A stretch of DNA of 64,000 nt from Anaeramoeba ignava BMAN (Eukaryota; Protista; Anaeramoebae): NCBI GenBank assembly GCA_028826165.1, contig JAPDFW010000009.1:1-64000 (forward strand). The letters run 5' to 3'. Within the stretch, counting starts at the first letter, position 1. Every line of letters starts with the position of its first letter. Positions 6,374 to 28,752 of this stretch are shown piece by piece. The notes under the pieces are model-generated. The model had not been told where the DNA came from. It was given only the letters and a program-made list of their open reading frames with translations, and made no database searches. Position numbers and translations under genes: made by a program.

Positions 6374-6498
6374 AATTAAAATTAAAATTAAAAATTAAAA
6401 TTAAAATTAAAATTAAAATTAAAATCAAAATCAAAATTAAAATTAAAATTAAAATTAAAATTCCAAAATTCATTTTTTTCATTTTTTTTCTTTTTAAA

Positions 6499-13752: not shown

Positions 13753-15550
13753 ATGAATGAAATTATATTTTTTGGTTCAAATAAATATCCAAAACTTTTC
13801 AAAAATAAAACAAATTCAATAAAAAAACCAATTCAATTTAATTTTGAAAATGAAAATGAAAATGAAAAACAAATTAAACAAATTTCATCAAGTAATTTTT
13901 CAACAATTTTCCTTTTTAAAAATGGAAAAGCAATAGAATATTTAAAAGAAAATGATTTAAATCAAAATCCTGAAAAAATCCAAATTGAAGAAAATATTCA
14001 AAAAGTAACTGTTTGTTCTCAAAATGAAGCTATTTTAACAATAGAAGGAAATTTATTTGCAAAAGGATATGATATCAATTCAAAAAATTATAATGAATTT
14101 ATCAATATTTCATCATTAATTGAAGATACAAATGATAGAATAATTCAAGATATTGCTTCTGGTTACAATTCAATTTATTTATTAACTTCAAATCAAAATG
14201 TTTATGGATTTGGTTCAAATCAATATGGTCAACTTGGTTTTGATTCTAAAAAACTTCAAAAAACAGAAAAACCAATTTTAATGATGAAAAATGTTTCTAA
14301 AATATTTTCAGGAAATACTTCAGATTCTGTTTTTCTTTTAAATTCAAATCAAGAATTATTTGGATGCGGATATAATACATATGGTCAACTTGGATTAGGA
14401 GAATCAAAAAAAAAAGACAAACCCAAAAAATTAACCAAAATCCAAAATATTCCAAAAGGTAAAATAATTGATATTCAATGTGGAAATTCCCAATCAATAA
14501 TGTTGATTGAAAATGAAAATGAAAATGAAAATGAAAATGAAAATCCAAAAAGAAAACTTTATTCATGTGGATATTATGGATATAATGGACTTGGCAAAAA
14601 TGAAAATATTGATGAATTTACTGAAATCAAATAATCTTTATTTGAAAATGATGATAATATTCTTGATTTTTCTGTTGGAGATGAATTTACTTTGATTTTA
14701 ACTTCCAATTCAAAATTAATTGGATTTGGAGATAATTCTAATGGTCAATTAGGAACTGGAGATACAAAAGAGCAACCAATTCCAATTCAAATTAAACTTC
14801 CTAAATTAAGATTTAATGAAAATATTTCCAATTATCATATTTCTTGTGGTTCTTATAAATCATTTCTTTATTATTCTCTTTTCCTTTTCCAATCTTGAAG
14901 AAGATTTGATAAAATTATTTAGAAGAAAAGAATTTTGTAATATTTCATTTAAAACCAAAAATGGAGAAATAATTGAAGCTCATAAATTAATATTGAAATA
15001 TAGATTAAATCAAAATCAAAATGAAATTGAAAAACTTCAAGAAATTATTTCAAATAAATCAATTAAAGAATCAAATCAAATATTTGAAATGATTTATTCA
15101 AACAAAATAATAAATCCAATATTATATTATGAAATCAAAGAAATTATAAATTTAAATGAAAAAATTGAAGAAACAATGAAAAGAATTTATTTAAATGAAA
15201 ATGAAAATGAAAATGAAAATGAAAATGAAAAAGATTTTATTATTGAAAGAAAAGAAAAACGATATAAATTTCCTAAATTAATATTAATAATGAGAAGTGA
15301 ATTATATCGAGGAATGTTTTTATCTGTAACAGAAGATACTTCTAATAAAGTTACAGATTATAGTGAATTAAGTAATAAATCATTTCAAATATTTGAATAT
15401 TGGATTTATTCAAATCAAATTAAAGATGAAATTCAAATTACACAAGAAATTATTGATGAAATTAAAATTGGAATTGATTATTTTCAATTAAATCAAACAA
15501 ATCCAAATTTATTTGATTTATTAATTAATAAATTTAAAAATCAAAATTAA
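13753..15550 (+). pseudogene. RCC1-BTB copy C, disrupted
   Basis: Paralog codon TCA is TAA at 14632-14634, plus a small deletion near 14878 that shifts the frame. Confidence 0.75.
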
Positions 15551-15586
15551 AATTAAAATTAAAATTAAAATTAAAATTAAAATAAT

Positions 15587-15770
15587 AAAAAGGGAATAAG
15601 TTTGGTAATCAAACATCATTCCCCCACATTACTTTGTAATGTTAGCTATGAAAAATTAAAAAAAGATTTTCTTTGGAAAAAGAAATGCTTTTCTAAAGGT
15701 GAAAAAAAAAAATAAAAATAAAAAATTAATTTAATTTTATTTCTTTTTCACCGAAATGGATTATGGATTA
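15587..15770 (-). ncRNA. Candidate structured small RNA of unknown class (four stem-loops, Sm-like site)
   Basis: Hairpins at 15698-15752, 15659-15694, 15626-15642 and 15591-15624. Plus-strand A.C mismatches become G.U pairs on the minus strand. Single-stranded AAUUUUUCA at 15649-15657; ends in a U-run. Confidence 0.55.
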
Positions 15771-15833
15771 AATTTAAAATAAAATTAAAATCAAAATTCC
15801 AAAAATCATTTTTTCATTTTTTTCATTTCAAAA

Positions 15834-17594
15834 ATGAATGAAAGTTTATTTTTTGGTGAAAATAAATATCCAAAACTTTTCAAAAATAAACCAAATGAAA
15901 TAACAAAACCAATTCAATTTAAATTTGAAAATGAAAATGAAAATGAAAAACAAATTAAACAAATTTCATCAGGTTTATTTTCAACAATTTTCCTTTTTGA
16001 AAATGGAAAAGCAATAGAATATTTAAAAGAAAATGATTCAAATCAAAATCCTGAAAAAATTCAAATTGAAAATATTCAAAAAGTAACTGTTGGTTTTTCA
16101 AATGAAACTATTTTAACAAAAGAAGGAAATGTATTTGCAAAAGGATATGATATCAATCCAAAAAATCCAAATGAATTTATCAATATTTCATCATTAATTA
16201 AAAATAAAAATGATAAAATAATTAAAGATATTGTTCCTGGAATTAATTCAATTTACTTATTAACTTCAAATCAAAATGCTTATGGAATTGGTTCAAATCA
16301 ATTTGGTCAACTTGGTTTAAAAAAATCAAAAATATCCAACAAACCAATTTTAATGATGAAAAATGTTTCTAAAATATTTTCAGGAAATTCTTCAGATCAT
16401 GTTTTCCTTTTAAATTCAAATCAAGAATTATTTGGATGTGGAAATAATAATTCAAATCAACTTGGATTAGGAAAATCAAGAAAAGAACAAGTGATCCAAA
16501 AATTAACCAAAATCCAAAATATTCCAAAAGGCAAAATAATTGATATTAAATGCGGATATTGGAATTCAATAATGTTAATTGAAAATGAAAATCCAAAAAG
16601 AAAACTTTATTCATGTGGGTATTTTCAATATAATGGACTTGGCAAAGATGAAAATATTGATGAATTTACTGAAATCAAATCATCTTTATTTGAAAATGAT
16701 AATAATATTCTTGAAATTTCTTGTGGATATGCTCATACTTTGATTTTAACTTCCAATTCAAAATTAATTGGATTTGGAAATAATAATAATGGTCAATTAG
16801 GAACTGGAGATACAAATAATCAATTAATCCCTATTCAAATTAAACTTCCTAAATTAAGATTTAATGAAGATATTTCTAATTATCATATTTCTTGTGGTTC
16901 TTATAAATCATTTCTTTATTATTCTCCTCTTTCTTTTTCCAATCTTGAAGAAGATTTGATAAAACTATTTGAAAGAAAAGAATTTTGTGATATTTCATTT
17001 AAAACCAAAAATGGAGAAATAATCAAAGTTCATAAATTAATATTGAAATATAGATTAAATCAAAATCAAAATGAAATTGAAAAACTTCAAGAAATTATTT
17101 CAAATAAATCAATTAAAGAATCAAATCAAATATTTGAAATGATTTATTCAAACAGAAAGATAAATCCAATATTATATTATGAAATTAAAGAAATTATAAA
17201 TTCAAATGAAAAAATTGAAGAAACAATGAAAAGAATTTATTTAAATGAAAATGAAAATGAAAATGAAAAAGATTTTATTATTGAAAAAAAAGAAAAACAA
17301 TATAAATTTCCTAAATTAATATTAATAATGAGAAGTGAATTATATCGAGGAATGTTTTTATCTGTAACAGAAGATAAATCAAATAAAGTTACAGATTATA
17401 GTGAATTAAGTAATAAATCATTTCAAATATTTGAATATTGGATTTATTCAAATCAAATTAAAGATGAAATTCAAATTACACAAGAAATTATTGATGAAAT
17501 TAAAATTGGAATTGATTATTTTCAATTAAATCAAACAAATCCAAATTTATTTGATTTATTAATTAATAAATTTAAAAATCAAAATCAAAATTAA
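15834..17594 (+). CDS. RCC1-repeat + BTB protein, copy D
   Basis: Intact 586-aa paralog. Confidence 0.9.
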   Translation: MNESLFFGENKYPKLFKNKPNEITKPIQFKFENENENEKQIKQISSGLFSTIFLFENGKAIEYLKENDSNQNPEKIQIENIQKVTVGFSNETILTKEGNVFAKGYDINPKNPNEFINISSLIKNKNDKIIKDIVPGINSIYLLTSNQNAYGIGSNQFGQLGLKKSKISNKPILMMKNVSKIFSGNSSDHVFLLNSNQELFGCGNNNSNQLGLGKSRKEQVIQKLTKIQNIPKGKIIDIKCGYWNSIMLIENENPKRKLYSCGYFQYNGLGKDENIDEFTEIKSSLFENDNNILEISCGYAHTLILTSNSKLIGFGNNNNGQLGTGDTNNQLIPIQIKLPKLRFNEDISNYHISCGSYKSFLYYSPLSFSNLEEDLIKLFERKEFCDISFKTKNGEIIKVHKLILKYRLNQNQNEIEKLQEIISNKSIKESNQIFEMIYSNRKINPILYYEIKEIINSNEKIEETMKRIYLNENENENEKDFIIEKKEKQYKFPKLILIMRSELYRGMFLSVTEDKSNKVTDYSELSNKSFQIFEYWIYSNQIKDEIQITQEIIDEIKIGIDYFQLNQTNPNLFDLLINKFKNQNQN

Positions 17595-22420: not shown

Positions 22421-23557
22421 TTAATAATAGCATTTTTGATCAATAATATTTGGTCCAACTTCATCATATTCTTCTTTTGAAATCCACATACGTTGGAAAG
22501 TGGATAATGATGCTAAAATAGATCCTCCAATCCAAGGTGAATATTTACGTTCTGGAGGTGCAACTAACTTAACTCTTGTTTGTTGAGGAAATAATGCTTT
22601 GAGTTCATTTTCAAGTCTATCTGAAAATTTTGGGAAAAATGTTGATCCTCCTGATAAAACAATATTTCCAATAAAATCTCTTCGAGCATCAATATCACTT
22701 TCCATAATTGAATTATAAATGATTTTATGAATTCCTTCTAAATCAATTCCCATTAATCTTGGTTGAAATAATCCTTCACAACATTTTATTCTTTCTTCAG
22801 AAACACTGATAATATCTCCATTTTTTAATTCATATTCTTTTTCTAAATTGAATTGATTTTGATTTTGTTTGATTTCTTCTTCATAATTAATTGAACAATA
22901 ACATAATTTTTCTTTAATTTCTCTTGCCATTTCAATTTCATTTGATGTTGTAAATGAATATCCCCTTTCTTCAAGTAATTTGATTAAGAAATTAGTTAGA
23001 TCAAAACCTGAAATATCATATCTATCAATTCCTTTAGGAATTTCATATCCTTCATAAATTGTTTGAGTAAGTGTTACTCCATGTCCAATATCAACAACAA
23101 TTCCTGTTGTTCTTCCTGATGAATATAACGATAAAACTCCAGAATTAGCAATATAAAAAGCAGGTATATCAAATGTTTCAAACATAATTTGAATTGTTTT
23201 TTCTCTGTGACTTTTTGGATTAAATGGTGGATTTATCATAAGAATTGGATGTTGATTTGGATTGATTTTGATTTGATTAGCGAAAATATTATCCCACATT
23301 TTTTCCATATTATCCCAATCTTCGACAATTCCTCTTTGAATTGGATAATTTAAATTTAATATTTCTCGATTTTTTTGAGCTTCATTTCCAATATATTCTG
23401 TTTTGGATGAAGTACTATAATTATCATATTGATTAAGTTTTTCCCCAATAACAGATGATGTAACTGTTCTTGGTGCGTCATCTCCTGCAAATCCTGTTCT
23501 AATCTCAAAACTTCCATTATCTAAAACGATTGCTTGAATTTCATCTTCGTCAAACAT
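22421..23557 (-). CDS. Divergent actin / actin-related protein, copy 1 (intronless)
   Basis: AIVLDNGS..TGFAGDDAPR, LSLYSSGRTTGIV, NIVLSGGST, APPERKYSPWIGGSILASLSTF..MWISKEEYDE; start at MFDEDE by comparison with copy 2. Confidence 0.9.
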   Translation of the reverse strand: MFDEDEIQAIVLDNGSFEIRTGFAGDDAPRTVTSSVIGEKLNQYDNYSTSSKTEYIGNEAQKNREILNLNYPIQRGIVEDWDNMEKMWDNIFANQIKINPNQHPILMINPPFNPKSHREKTIQIMFETFDIPAFYIANSGVLSLYSSGRTTGIVVDIGHGVTLTQTIYEGYEIPKGIDRYDISGFDLTNFLIKLLEERGYSFTTSNEIEMAREIKEKLCYCSINYEEEIKQNQNQFNLEKEYELKNGDIISVSEERIKCCEGLFQPRLMGIDLEGIHKIIYNSIMESDIDARRDFIGNIVLSGGSTFFPKFSDRLENELKALFPQQTRVKLVAPPERKYSPWIGGSILASLSTFQRMWISKEEYDEVGPNIIDQKCYY

Positions 23558-23710
23558 TTTTAAAAAATTAAAATTAAAATTGAAAAAAATGAAAAAAATA
23601 TTTTTGCTTTTTTTTTCATTCATTTTGAAAAAAAAAAAAAAGAAGAATGAAAATTGAAAATTGATTGAAGAATGAAAAAATTGAAAAAGAAAATTGAAAG
23701 AAGAAAATGC

Positions 23711-24847
23711 TTAATAATAGCATTTTTGATCAATAATATTTGGTCCAACTTCATCATATTCTTCTTTTGAAATCCACATACCGTGGAAAGTGGATAATGA
23801 TGCTAAAATAGATCCTCCAATCCAAGGTGAATATTTACGTTCTGGAGGTGCAACTAACTTAACTCTTGCTTGTTGAGGAAATAATGCTTTGAGTTCATTT
23901 TCAAGTCTATCTGAAAATTTTGGGAAAAATGTTGATCCTCCTGATAAAACAATATTTCCAATAAAATCTCTTCGAGCATCAATATCACTTTCCATAATTG
24001 AATTATAAATGATTTTATGAATTCCTTCTAAATCAATTCCCATTAATCTTGGTTGAAATAATCCTTCACAACATTTTATTCTTTCTTCAGAAACACTAAT
24101 AATATCTCCATTTTTTAATTCATATTCTTTTTCTAAATTGAATTGATTTTGATTTTGTTTGATTTCTTCTTCATAATTAATTGAACAATAACATAATTTT
24201 TCTTTAATTTCTCTTGCCATTTCAATTTCATTTGATGTTGTAAATGAATATCCTCTTTCTTCAAGTAATTTGATTAAGAAATTAGTTAAATCAAAACCTG
24301 AAATATCATATCTATCAATTCCTTTAGGAATTTCATATCCTTCATAAATTGTTTGGGTAAGTGTTACTCCATGTCCAATATCAACAACAATTCCTGTTGT
24401 TCTTCCTGATGAATATAATGATAAAACTCCAGAATTAGCAATATAAAAAGCAGGTATATCAAATGTTTCAAACATAATTTGAGTTGTTTTTTCTCTGTGA
24501 CTTTTTGGATTAAATGGTGGATTTATCATAAGAATTGGATGCTGATTTGGATTGATTTTGATTTGATTAGCGAAAATATCATTCCATATTTTTTCCATAT
24601 TATCCCAATCTTCAACAATTCCTCTTTGAATTGGATAATTTAAATTTAATATTTCTCGATTTTTTTGAGCTTCATTTCCAATATATTCTGTTTTGGATGA
24701 AGTACTGTAATTATCATATTGATTAAGTTTTTCCCCAATAACAGATGATGTAACAGTTCTTGGTGCGTCATCTCCTGCAAATCCTGTTCTAATCTCAAAA
24801 CTTCCATTATCTAAAACGATTGCTTGAATTTCATCTTCGTCAAACAT
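23711..24847 (-). CDS. Divergent actin / actin-related protein, copy 2
   Basis: Nearly identical to copy 1, including the upstream leader. Confidence 0.9.
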   Translation of the reverse strand: MFDEDEIQAIVLDNGSFEIRTGFAGDDAPRTVTSSVIGEKLNQYDNYSTSSKTEYIGNEAQKNREILNLNYPIQRGIVEDWDNMEKIWNDIFANQIKINPNQHPILMINPPFNPKSHREKTTQIMFETFDIPAFYIANSGVLSLYSSGRTTGIVVDIGHGVTLTQTIYEGYEIPKGIDRYDISGFDLTNFLIKLLEERGYSFTTSNEIEMAREIKEKLCYCSINYEEEIKQNQNQFNLEKEYELKNGDIISVSEERIKCCEGLFQPRLMGIDLEGIHKIIYNSIMESDIDARRDFIGNIVLSGGSTFFPKFSDRLENELKALFPQQARVKLVAPPERKYSPWIGGSILASLSTFHGMWISKEEYDEVGPNIIDQKCYY

Positions 24848-24965
24848 TTTTAAAAAATTAAATTTAAAATGAAAAAAATGAAAAAAATATTTTTGCTTTT
24901 TTTTTCATTCATTTTGAAAAAAAAAAAAAAGAAGAATGAAAATTGAATCAAGGAAATGCTTAGTA

Positions 24966-26105
24966 TTAGCATTTTTGATCAATAATATTTGGTCCAACTT
25001 CATCATATTCTTCTTTTGAAATCCACATACCGTGGAAAGTGGATAATGATGCTAAAATAGATCCTCCAATCCAAGGTGAATATTTACGTTCTGGAGGTAC
25101 AACTAACTTAACTCTTGCTTGTTGAGGAAATAATGCTTTGAGTTCGTTCAAAAGTCTATCTGTAAAATTTGGGAAAAATGTTGATCCTCCTGATAAAATA
25201 ATGTTTCCAATAAAATCTCTTCGAGCATCAACATCACATTCCATAATTGAATTATAAATGATTTTATGAATTCCTTCTAAATCAATTCCCATTAATCTTG
25301 GTTGAAATAATCCTTCACAACATTTTATTCTTTCTTCAGAAATACTAATAATATCTCCATTTTTTAATTCATATTCTTTTTCTAAATTGAATTGATTTTG
25401 ATTTTGTTTGATTTCTTCTTCATAATTAATTGAACAATAACATAATTTTTCTTTGATTTCTCTTGCCATTTCAATTTCATTTGATGTTGTAAATGAATAT
25501 CCCCTTTCTTCAAGTAATTTGATTAAAAAATTAGTTAAATCAAAACCTGAAATATCATATCTATCAATTGCGTTAGGAATTTCATATCCTTCATAAATTG
25601 GCTGAGTATGTGTTACTCCATGTCCAATATCAACAATAATTCCTGATCCTCTTCCTGATGAATATAACGATAATTTTCCAGAATTAGCAATATAAAAAGC
25701 AGGTATATCAAATGTTTCAAACATAATTTGAATTGTTTTTTCTCTGTGACTTTTTGGATTAAATGGTGGATTTATCATAAGAATTGGATGTTGATTTGGA
25801 TTGATTTTGATTTGATTAGCGAAAATATCATTCCATATTTTTTCCATATTATCCCAATCTTCAATAATTCCTCTTTGAATTGGATAATTTAAATTTAATA
25901 TTTCTCGATTTGTTTGAGCTTCATTTCCAATATATTCTGTTTTGGATGAAGTACTACTACTATTATAACTATCATATTGATTAAGTTTTTCCCCAATAAC
26001 AGATGATGTAACAATTCTTGGTTCATCATCTCCTGCAAATCCTGTTCTAATCTCAAAACTTCCATTATCTAAAACGATTGCTTGAATTTCATCTGGGTCA
26101 AACAT
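24966..26105 (-). CDS. Divergent actin / actin-related protein, copy 3
   Basis: More diverged paralog; ends QKC* because a TAT codon has become TAA. Confidence 0.9.
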   Translation of the reverse strand: MFDPDEIQAIVLDNGSFEIRTGFAGDDEPRIVTSSVIGEKLNQYDSYNSSSTSSKTEYIGNEAQTNREILNLNYPIQRGIIEDWDNMEKIWNDIFANQIKINPNQHPILMINPPFNPKSHREKTIQIMFETFDIPAFYIANSGKLSLYSSGRGSGIIVDIGHGVTHTQPIYEGYEIPNAIDRYDISGFDLTNFLIKLLEERGYSFTTSNEIEMAREIKEKLCYCSINYEEEIKQNQNQFNLEKEYELKNGDIISISEERIKCCEGLFQPRLMGIDLEGIHKIIYNSIMECDVDARRDFIGNIILSGGSTFFPNFTDRLLNELKALFPQQARVKLVVPPERKYSPWIGGSILASLSTFHGMWISKEEYDEVGPNIIDQKC

Positions 26106-26212
26106 TTTTAAAAAATTAAAATTAAAATTAAAAAAATGAAAAAAATATTTTTGCTTTTGGATTTTTTCCCATTTTTCCCATTTTTCATTTTTCATTTTTT
26201 TTCTTCTTAAAA

Positions 26213-27991: not shown

Positions 27992-28710
27992 AAATTAAAA
28001 TTAAAATTAAAATCAAAATCAAAAATCAAAATCAAAATCAAAATTAAAATTAAAATTAAAAATTAAAATCAAAATCAAAATTAAAATTAAAATTAAAATC
28101 AAAATCAAAATTAAAATCAAAATCAAAATTAAAATTAAAATTAAAATCAAAATTAAAATTAAAATTAAAAATTAAAATTAAAATTAAAAAAATCAAAATT
28201 AAAATTAAAATTAAAATTAAAATTAAAATTAAAATCAAAATCAAAATTAAAATTAAAATTAAAATTAAAATTAAAATTAAAATTTAAAATTAAAATTAAA
28301 ATTAAAAATTAAAATTAAAATTAAAAAAAAATTAAAATTAAAATTAAAATTAAAATTAAAATCAAAATCAAAATCAATATTAAAAATCAAAATCAAAATT
28401 AAAATCAAAATCAAAATTAAAATTAAAATTAAAATTAAAATTAAAATTAAAATCAAAATCAAAATTAAAATTAAAATCAAAATCAAAATCAAAATTAAAA
28501 TCAAAATCAAAATCAAAATCAAAATCAAAATTAAAATCAAAATTAAAATTAAAATTAAATTTAAAATTAAAATTAAAATTAAAATCAAAATTAAAATTAA
28601 AATCAAAATTAAAATTAAAATTAAAATTAAAATTAAAATTAAAATTAAAATTAAAATTAAAATCAAAATCAAAATTAAAATTAAAATCAAAATTAAAATT
28701 AAAATCAAAA
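27992..28710 (+). repeat. (AAAATT/AAAATC)n microsatellite between RCC1-BTB copies
   Basis: Visible; similar shorter tails follow copies A, B, C, D and the fragment. Confidence 0.95.
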
Positions 28711-28752
28711 TAAAAATTCCAAAATCATTTTTTCATTTTTTTCTTTTCAAAA

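Follow-up and report, generated by a model that had tools for sequence, protein, structure and literature searches.

A folded element lies between two RCC1-BTB genes

The window analyzed here covers the opening 64 kb of contig C11 from Anaeramoeba ignava BMAN, in an assembly of 42.8 Mb with ~18% GC; the genome paper for this strain gives 80.65% A+T, short and AT-rich introns, and ~33 AT-AC introns. The locus is flanked by two plus-strand RCC1-BTB genes, the first with an ORF that ends at 15550 and the next with an ORF that starts at 15834. The DNA between them (15551-15833) has a GC content of 17%, compared with 6% in the spacers at 6374-6498 and 27992-28752, both of which are nearly pure (AAAATY)n, in agreement with the preliminary description of ~180 nt of unique sequence inside a microsatellite spacer. 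Directly before the ATG of each RCC1-BTB gene (6460-6498, 28715-28752, and 15795-15833) sits a ~40-nt block (AAAATTCCAAAA..TCATTTTTTTCATTTTTTT..), which is probably a core promoter or 5' UTR of the family. Elsewhere in the window, three actin genes with ORFs of 400, 378, and 409 aa are arranged in tandem on the minus strand (22421-26195).

Read on the minus strand, the sequence at 15587-15770 has a minimum free energy fold of four hairpins at -45 kcal/mol (z = -6.2), and none of 200 shuffled sequences folded as well; the plus strand gave -40.2 kcal/mol (z = -4.3). Five G.U pairs are present in the minus-strand fold, three of them in the last hairpin, and their plus-strand equivalents are A.C mismatches, which upholds the strand asymmetry noted previously. 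The minus strand is taken to be the coding strand, as had been proposed, because it is favored by the orientation of the promoter described below, by the five G.U pairs, and by its better z-score. The four hairpins themselves fared unevenly: the fold is far better than those of shuffles, but the first stem and the second hairpin are not conserved among the copies of the element found elsewhere in the genome, and for the second hairpin this is true of both sequence and register. Scans of the window and the region with Rfam 15, at gathering scores and at E-values up to 10, matched no family, so the element does remain unrecognized as a member of any Rfam snRNA family.

Seven copies of the element share an invariant 3' module

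A BLAST search of the whole assembly found six more copies, bringing the total to seven: the window copy (C11:15590-15701, minus strand), four on contig C80 (near 176962, 180397, 204532, and 208520), and two on contig C109 (near 139448 and 146693). A covariance model (R1) built from the 3' part of the element recovered exactly the same seven in a genome search, at ~100 bits each, with the next match at 23 bits and no diverged paralogues. None of the six sister loci matched anything in Rfam. The copies occupy two unrelated gene-array contexts. Those on C109 lie within RCC1-BTB arrays that are paralogous to the window, with flanking coding DNA 85-94% identical to it; those on C80 lie between unrelated, unannotated ORFs of ~695 aa, which have no Pfam domain and run on the same strand as the copies. 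The presence of the C80 copies amid unrelated ORFs indicates that the unit is independent of its neighbors.

Alignment of the copies revealed a sharp contrast in conservation. The 66-68-nt 3' module, from the U-run to CCCTT, is 98% identical between the four lineages of copies and varies at two loop positions only, and conservation stops at CCCTT. Between the same lineages, identity is 41-58% in the 5' arm, the spacer, and the outer flanks, all of them rich in indels, and 74% in the promoter box. The four C80 copies are near-identical across >200 nt, and gene conversion between copies could contribute to the 98% identity. Covariation was sought at 22 pairs in the two invariant hairpins and none had a change on both sides, because the stems never vary and no orthologue was found in which they might. 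Two scans for relatives in metagenomes gave no matches and then 77 chance matches, the best of which was a GC-rich bacterial terminator.

Downstream of both C109 copies (L002 1630-2400; L006 1544-2383) there is a ~93-nt tandem repeat, the unit of which opens with ~22 nt corresponding to the end of the RNA gene (the apex of the terminal hairpin plus CCCTT). A decayed gene copy without a CCATAA box is found at L002 ~1820-1960, also on C109.

The element shares an upstream box with the snRNA genes

The minus-strand sequence upstream of the conserved module contains the box CCATAA-N7-CGG (15751-15766). Across the genome this motif occurs 25 times, compared with 12 for a reversed control, and within AT-rich intergenic DNA it is found before the seven copies and before U2, plus at one site on contig C95. 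In all seven copies the distance from the box to a conserved CAC is 62-68 nt, and a run of 9-11 T residues immediately precedes the CAC. In the window copy, the intervening A/T-rich spacer (15702-15750) is the part that is 58% identical between lineages, and it ends in an 11-T run (15712-15702).

The U2, U4, U5, U6, and U6atac genes of this genome were located with Rfam models. A whole-genome U1 screen missed the true U1 gene, which was recovered by combining the CCATAA box with ACTTACC; it lies at C115:417635-417803 on the minus strand (L076 1341-1509), scores 43.9 bits (E = 4e-9), below the Rfam gathering score, and has ACUUACCU, an AUUGCAC loop, and an AAUUUGUG Sm site. U1, U2, U4, U5, and U6 are each single copy. 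CCATAA was found upstream of the RNA 5' end by 62 nt in U1, 67 nt in U4 and in U6atac, 73 nt in U2, and 99 nt in U6; no clear box was seen within 200 nt upstream of U5 (L039). The resemblance is closest in U2, where the layout is that of the element: box, A-rich spacer, T12, and RNA 5' end. The (T)CCATAA box therefore looks like a promoter element of the snRNA genes of this organism. It also resembles the plant USE and the consensus of the dictyostelid DUSE.

These data change the reading of the 5' part of the locus. The preliminary description had proposed a four-hairpin transcript of 184 nt that opened with a leader (15770-15753) and a first stem (15752-15698). The leader overlaps the CCATAA box common to U1, U2, U4, U6, and U6atac, and the first stem corresponds to the A/T spacer plus the T-run, with its pairing lost in the C80 copies. 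Because both coincide with an snRNA-type box and spacer, the leader and the first stem probably lie outside the RNA, and the first ~70 nt of the supposed transcript are better read as promoter and spacer. Neither the first stem nor a doubled UAAUCCA noted within this region is conserved in the other six copies. Since the box, spacing, and layout are those of the snRNA genes, the RNA start is most likely at or just after the CAC.

Several further sites with related sequences were seen in the course of this survey. The box on C95 (L031; C95:193501-193516, plus strand) lies in AT-rich intergenic DNA, is flanked by the inverted repeat CTTGTCAACT ... AGTTGACAAAC, and possibly marks another small-RNA gene. 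A near-identical pair of U2-like sequences, L012 (C57:254345-254471) and L013 (C67:346616-346742), scores 52 bits and has CCATAA at about -60; both members differ from the main U2 on C13 at the 5' end and in the 3' half. The motifs TTATTCCA(C/T)TTTTTT and ATTAATAAA recur beside snRNA-type genes: downstream of U1 (L076), where they build 27-nt tandem repeats, in the L002 and L006 repeat units, ~190 nt upstream of U2 (L011), and, in inverted orientation, downstream of the C80 copies (L026-L028). They may represent a 3'-end signal, a neighboring promoter, or a satellite.

The predicted RNA has a variable 5' arm, an Sm-like site, and two invariant hairpins

The predicted RNA is ~112 nt long in the window (15590-15701, minus strand), running from the conserved CAC to CCCUU; we infer both ends from the comparison above, and the sequence between them folds with z = -4.2. 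Transcription would start at or near the CAC (~15701-15693), probably by RNA polymerase II, and would yield RNAs of about 89-113 nt among the copies. RNA polymerase II is favored over RNA polymerase III because of the internal run of five to seven T residues and because no T4 run directly follows the C80 copies. A possible alternative start, the second T-run (CAUAGC), would give an RNA of ~61 nt without the Sm site, but it is disfavored because the box would then be 91-116 nt away, a distance far too variable for such a promoter. In one sequencing run of unknown kind, 30% of words were present.

The RNA would begin with a variable 5' arm (15658-15701), which starts with CAC-Y-Y, ranges from 28 to 51 nt across the copies, and accounts for the lowest identity between the four lineages (41%). 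Three of the four variants have a hairpin within the arm, beginning 8-10 nt in from the 5' end (~15694-15659 in the window copy), in no common register. The arm is followed by a single-stranded, Sm-like site, AAUUUUUCAUAG (15646-15657), present in all copies as A-U5-7-CAUAG; chance U-runs arise easily at 18% GC, which counts against it. It sits between stems and ends in C instead of the canonical G, and the local U2 (AUUUUUAG) and U5 (AUUUUUAA) sites likewise do not have the canonical final G. An unrecognized snRNA-type gene with an Sm-like site between stems had been proposed from the window alone, and the element does look like such a gene. The order after the arm is constant: A-U5-7-CAUAGCUA, then a 7-bp hairpin with an AAA loop (15626-15642), which is identical in all seven copies, then a terminal hairpin of 15 bp (15590-15625) with one bulged U, three G.U pairs, and the two variable loop positions, ending in CCCUU.

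The single-stranded part of the constant region, AUAGCUAAC, was considered as a possible guide. Its complement is not enriched in the genome (121 sites with up to two mismatches, compared with 466 for the control), and this role was rejected. Against U1, U2, U4, U5, U6, and U6atac, the invariant stretch paired no better than shuffled sequences did.

Assessment of alternative identities

The preliminary description suggested a spliced-leader RNA, in which a leader ending in ...UUUCG would be followed by the donor GUGAAA; in a second, dinoflagellate-like version, the donor would be AAA|GUAAUGU, inside the first invariant hairpin, and the Sm site would fall in the exon. The seven copies, set against single-copy spliceosomal snRNA genes, would suit such an RNA, and the sequence CG|GUAAAAAU in the C80 copies would be a good donor by local standards (introns that join ORFs in the window give the consensus G|GTAAAT). 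In known spliced-leader RNAs the donor is paired with the preceding strand, and the GUAAUG of the invariant hairpin is paired in the same way. This reading does not hold, as the supposed leader is the promoter box, also found 73 nt upstream of U2. At the proposed donor site, the C109 copy near 139448 and the U2 promoter both have GA, and the sequence that follows CCATAA differs among copies. Moving the exon into the 5' arm does not help, since the arm has no conserved GU and three of the four variants have none, and the second version would require an intron without an Sm site and an exon of 49-68 nt whose 5' half varies. BLAST of the whole assembly found no genomic relics of the leader, and the literature searched holds no report of trans-splicing in Anaeramoeba. 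We consider a spliced leader extremely improbable. It is also unlikely, but much less so, that the element is no functional RNA at all and is instead a duplicated stretch of DNA, such as the decayed remains of an snRNA gene or a palindrome associated with repeats, with copies that are alike through recent duplication and gene conversion. In line with this, the copies occur only in local arrays, spread over three contigs, the four on C80 are near-identical across >200 nt, and on C109 the last 22 nt of the gene have seeded the ~93-nt tandem repeat, beside which the boxless copy has decayed. Relaxed selection in this genome is illustrated by that decayed copy, whereas the seven others have kept the box and its spacing to the CAC in every case; the contrast between 98% and 41-58% identity holds between four lineages with diverged flanks, and the G.U asymmetry favors an RNA fold over a DNA fold.

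If the RNA is functional, it could in principle be a very divergent snRNA of the minor spliceosome (U11, U12, or U4atac). U12-type introns and a U6atac gene exist in the genome, where U11 reached only 26 bits, U12 gave no match, and the U4atac model found U4 again and nothing else; the invariant stretch contains GCUAAC, the complement of GUUAGC in U6atac. However, these motifs would form a duplex of only 6 bp (z = -0.8), the Sm site lies on the opposite side of GCUAAC from that expected of both U4atac and U12, and nothing in the element is complementary to the AUAUCCUUU donor. The U11, U12, and U4atac models miss the locus, which has no Rfam match even at E = 10, and seven copies with a variable 5' end would be unexpected for RNAs that serve ~33 introns. 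This identity is very unlikely, and it retains a small residual probability; U11, U12, and U4atac were not confidently located in the genome. A U7-like guide snRNP is improbable to a lesser degree. Here, the 5' arm would pair with targets and an Sm/Lsm ring on AAUUUUUCAUAG would recruit a cleavage factor, making an RNA-guided 3'-end processing particle outside animals. The layout of a single-stranded 5' arm, an Sm site, and 3' hairpin(s) fits, and a variable arm on a constant scaffold is suited to a guide. The animal U7 Sm-site consensus is AAUUUGUCUAG (PMC12360213), relative to which AAUUUUUCAUAG has one substitution and an extra A, and two of the arm variants start with the pyrimidine-rich CACUCUU. 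Against this, the Rfam U7 model (RF00066) had no match in the region or, genome-wide, at any of the seven loci, and the RNA is 89-113 nt with two hairpins, compared with ~60 nt and one hairpin in U7. In the histone 3' flanks that were read there is neither a stem-loop nor a purine element that matches the arms, a covariance model search for the histone 3' stem-loop gave a best score of 16.9 bits with no match accepted, and SLBP is absent (best PF15247 match, E = 0.15). With no 3' stem-loop in the histone flanks read and no SLBP, the element is not U7 itself. The U7-like guide role is the most interesting remaining reading, and in a more general form, which we rate as somewhat less probable again, the element would belong to an Sm-class guide family outside animals that combines a constant U7-like scaffold with 5' antisense arms interchangeable for each target. 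It is similarly doubtful that each variant directs an RNA-processing step, such as cleavage or 3'-end formation, in a lineage without the histone stem-loop system.

The H3 and H2B 3' flanks (L053-L062) share TTTAATTTGAAAT ~35-90 nt after the stop codon, and the H3 genes encode proteins of 184-190 aa whose N-terminal tail contains a long (GQK)n-like insertion.

Other candidates were rejected. U1 (RF00003) does not apply because the arms vary and fit the local donor consensus inconsistently, only the C80 type has CUUAC, there is no Rfam match, and the true U1 is on C115. A telomerase RNA was suggested by the doubled UAAUCCA, but the doubling occurs in the window copy only, within the promoter, and the invariant module contains no permuted repeat; the same observation disposes of the proposal that the doubled motif is a guide or template. 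No telomere-like repeat was found at the end of C11 that forms the start of the window. The idea of a SINE-like insert, or retroposed RNA, is contradicted by homology that includes the external upstream promoter and by the presence of only seven copies, in local arrays on three contigs. A box C/D or H/ACA snoRNA was rejected because UGAUGA is present only in the C80 arm, no CUGA or ACA is found at the 3' end, and no Rfam snoRNA model matched. An intron-like reading, with a metamonad-type branch site and acceptor, is unsupported by the 3' ends of local introns.

Discussion

These data indicate that the seven-copy, snRNA-type gene family is real and selectively maintained and that it has no membership in a known family. 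We estimate a probability of roughly 0.6 that Anaeramoeba ignava has a lineage-specific small nuclear RNA gene in seven copies, of which the element is one. Judged by sequence, the family is probably an Sm-class-like snRNA restricted to this lineage, in which the 3' scaffold is constant and the 5' arm varies. As a working guess, the product would be a putative non-spliceosomal Sm-class RNP. An Sm or Sm-like ring would assemble on the A-U5-7-C site between the stems, the two invariant hairpins would act as a protein-binding, stabilizing scaffold, and the variable 5' arm could act as a guide by base pairing, like that of U7, or else be a leader under no constraint.

Comparison with known systems is consistent with an snRNA-type gene that stands outside the established classes. 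The element is like the local U1, U2, U4, and U5 genes in its upstream CCATAA box at the same distance, its T-rich stretch before the start, its U-rich Sm-type site between stems, its GC-richer terminal hairpin, and its size. It is unlike the spliceosomal snRNAs in that it has no ACUUACCU, GUAGUA, U5 loop 1, or U4/U6 pairing strands and no Rfam match, is present in seven copies rather than one, and varies between copies in its 5' third. Animal U7, a non-spliceosomal RNA, has a comparable order of 5' arm, Sm site, and 3' hairpin, and its Sm-site consensus, AAUUUGUCUAG, is close to the Sm-like site of the element, but the element is longer and has two hairpins, the U7 model is silent, and the genome has no histone stem-loop, SLBP, or matching downstream element. 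Spliced-leader RNAs and nematode SmY RNAs are likewise small and multicopy, with a hairpin-flanked Sm site and an snRNA-type promoter; the element has no conserved 5' exon with a donor, and its supposed leader is promoter. The dictyostelid Class I RNAs are a lineage-restricted multicopy class recognized through an element ~60 nt upstream that is common to snRNA genes (PMC7919456). The present element shares with them its restricted, multicopy occurrence and its snRNA-type promoter element at a similar distance. They differ in being 42-65 nt long and in lacking an Sm site, and they carry an 11-nt motif and a terminal 5'/3' stem; they also come from a different eukaryotic supergroup and have no sequence relation to the element.

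Anaeramoebae are a deep, little-studied branch allied to the metamonads, and the literature searched contains no report on the small RNAs of Anaeramoeba. The CCATAA box, with its spacing of 62-73 nt, provides a handle for annotating non-coding RNA genes here and has already recovered the true U1. Its resemblance to USE and DUSE hints at an old, shared grammar of snRNA promoters. If the genes are expressed, they would constitute an abundant-looking class of nuclear RNA with an snRNA promoter and an Sm-like core, outside the nine spliceosomal families, and a fresh function for the Sm scaffold would come within experimental reach.
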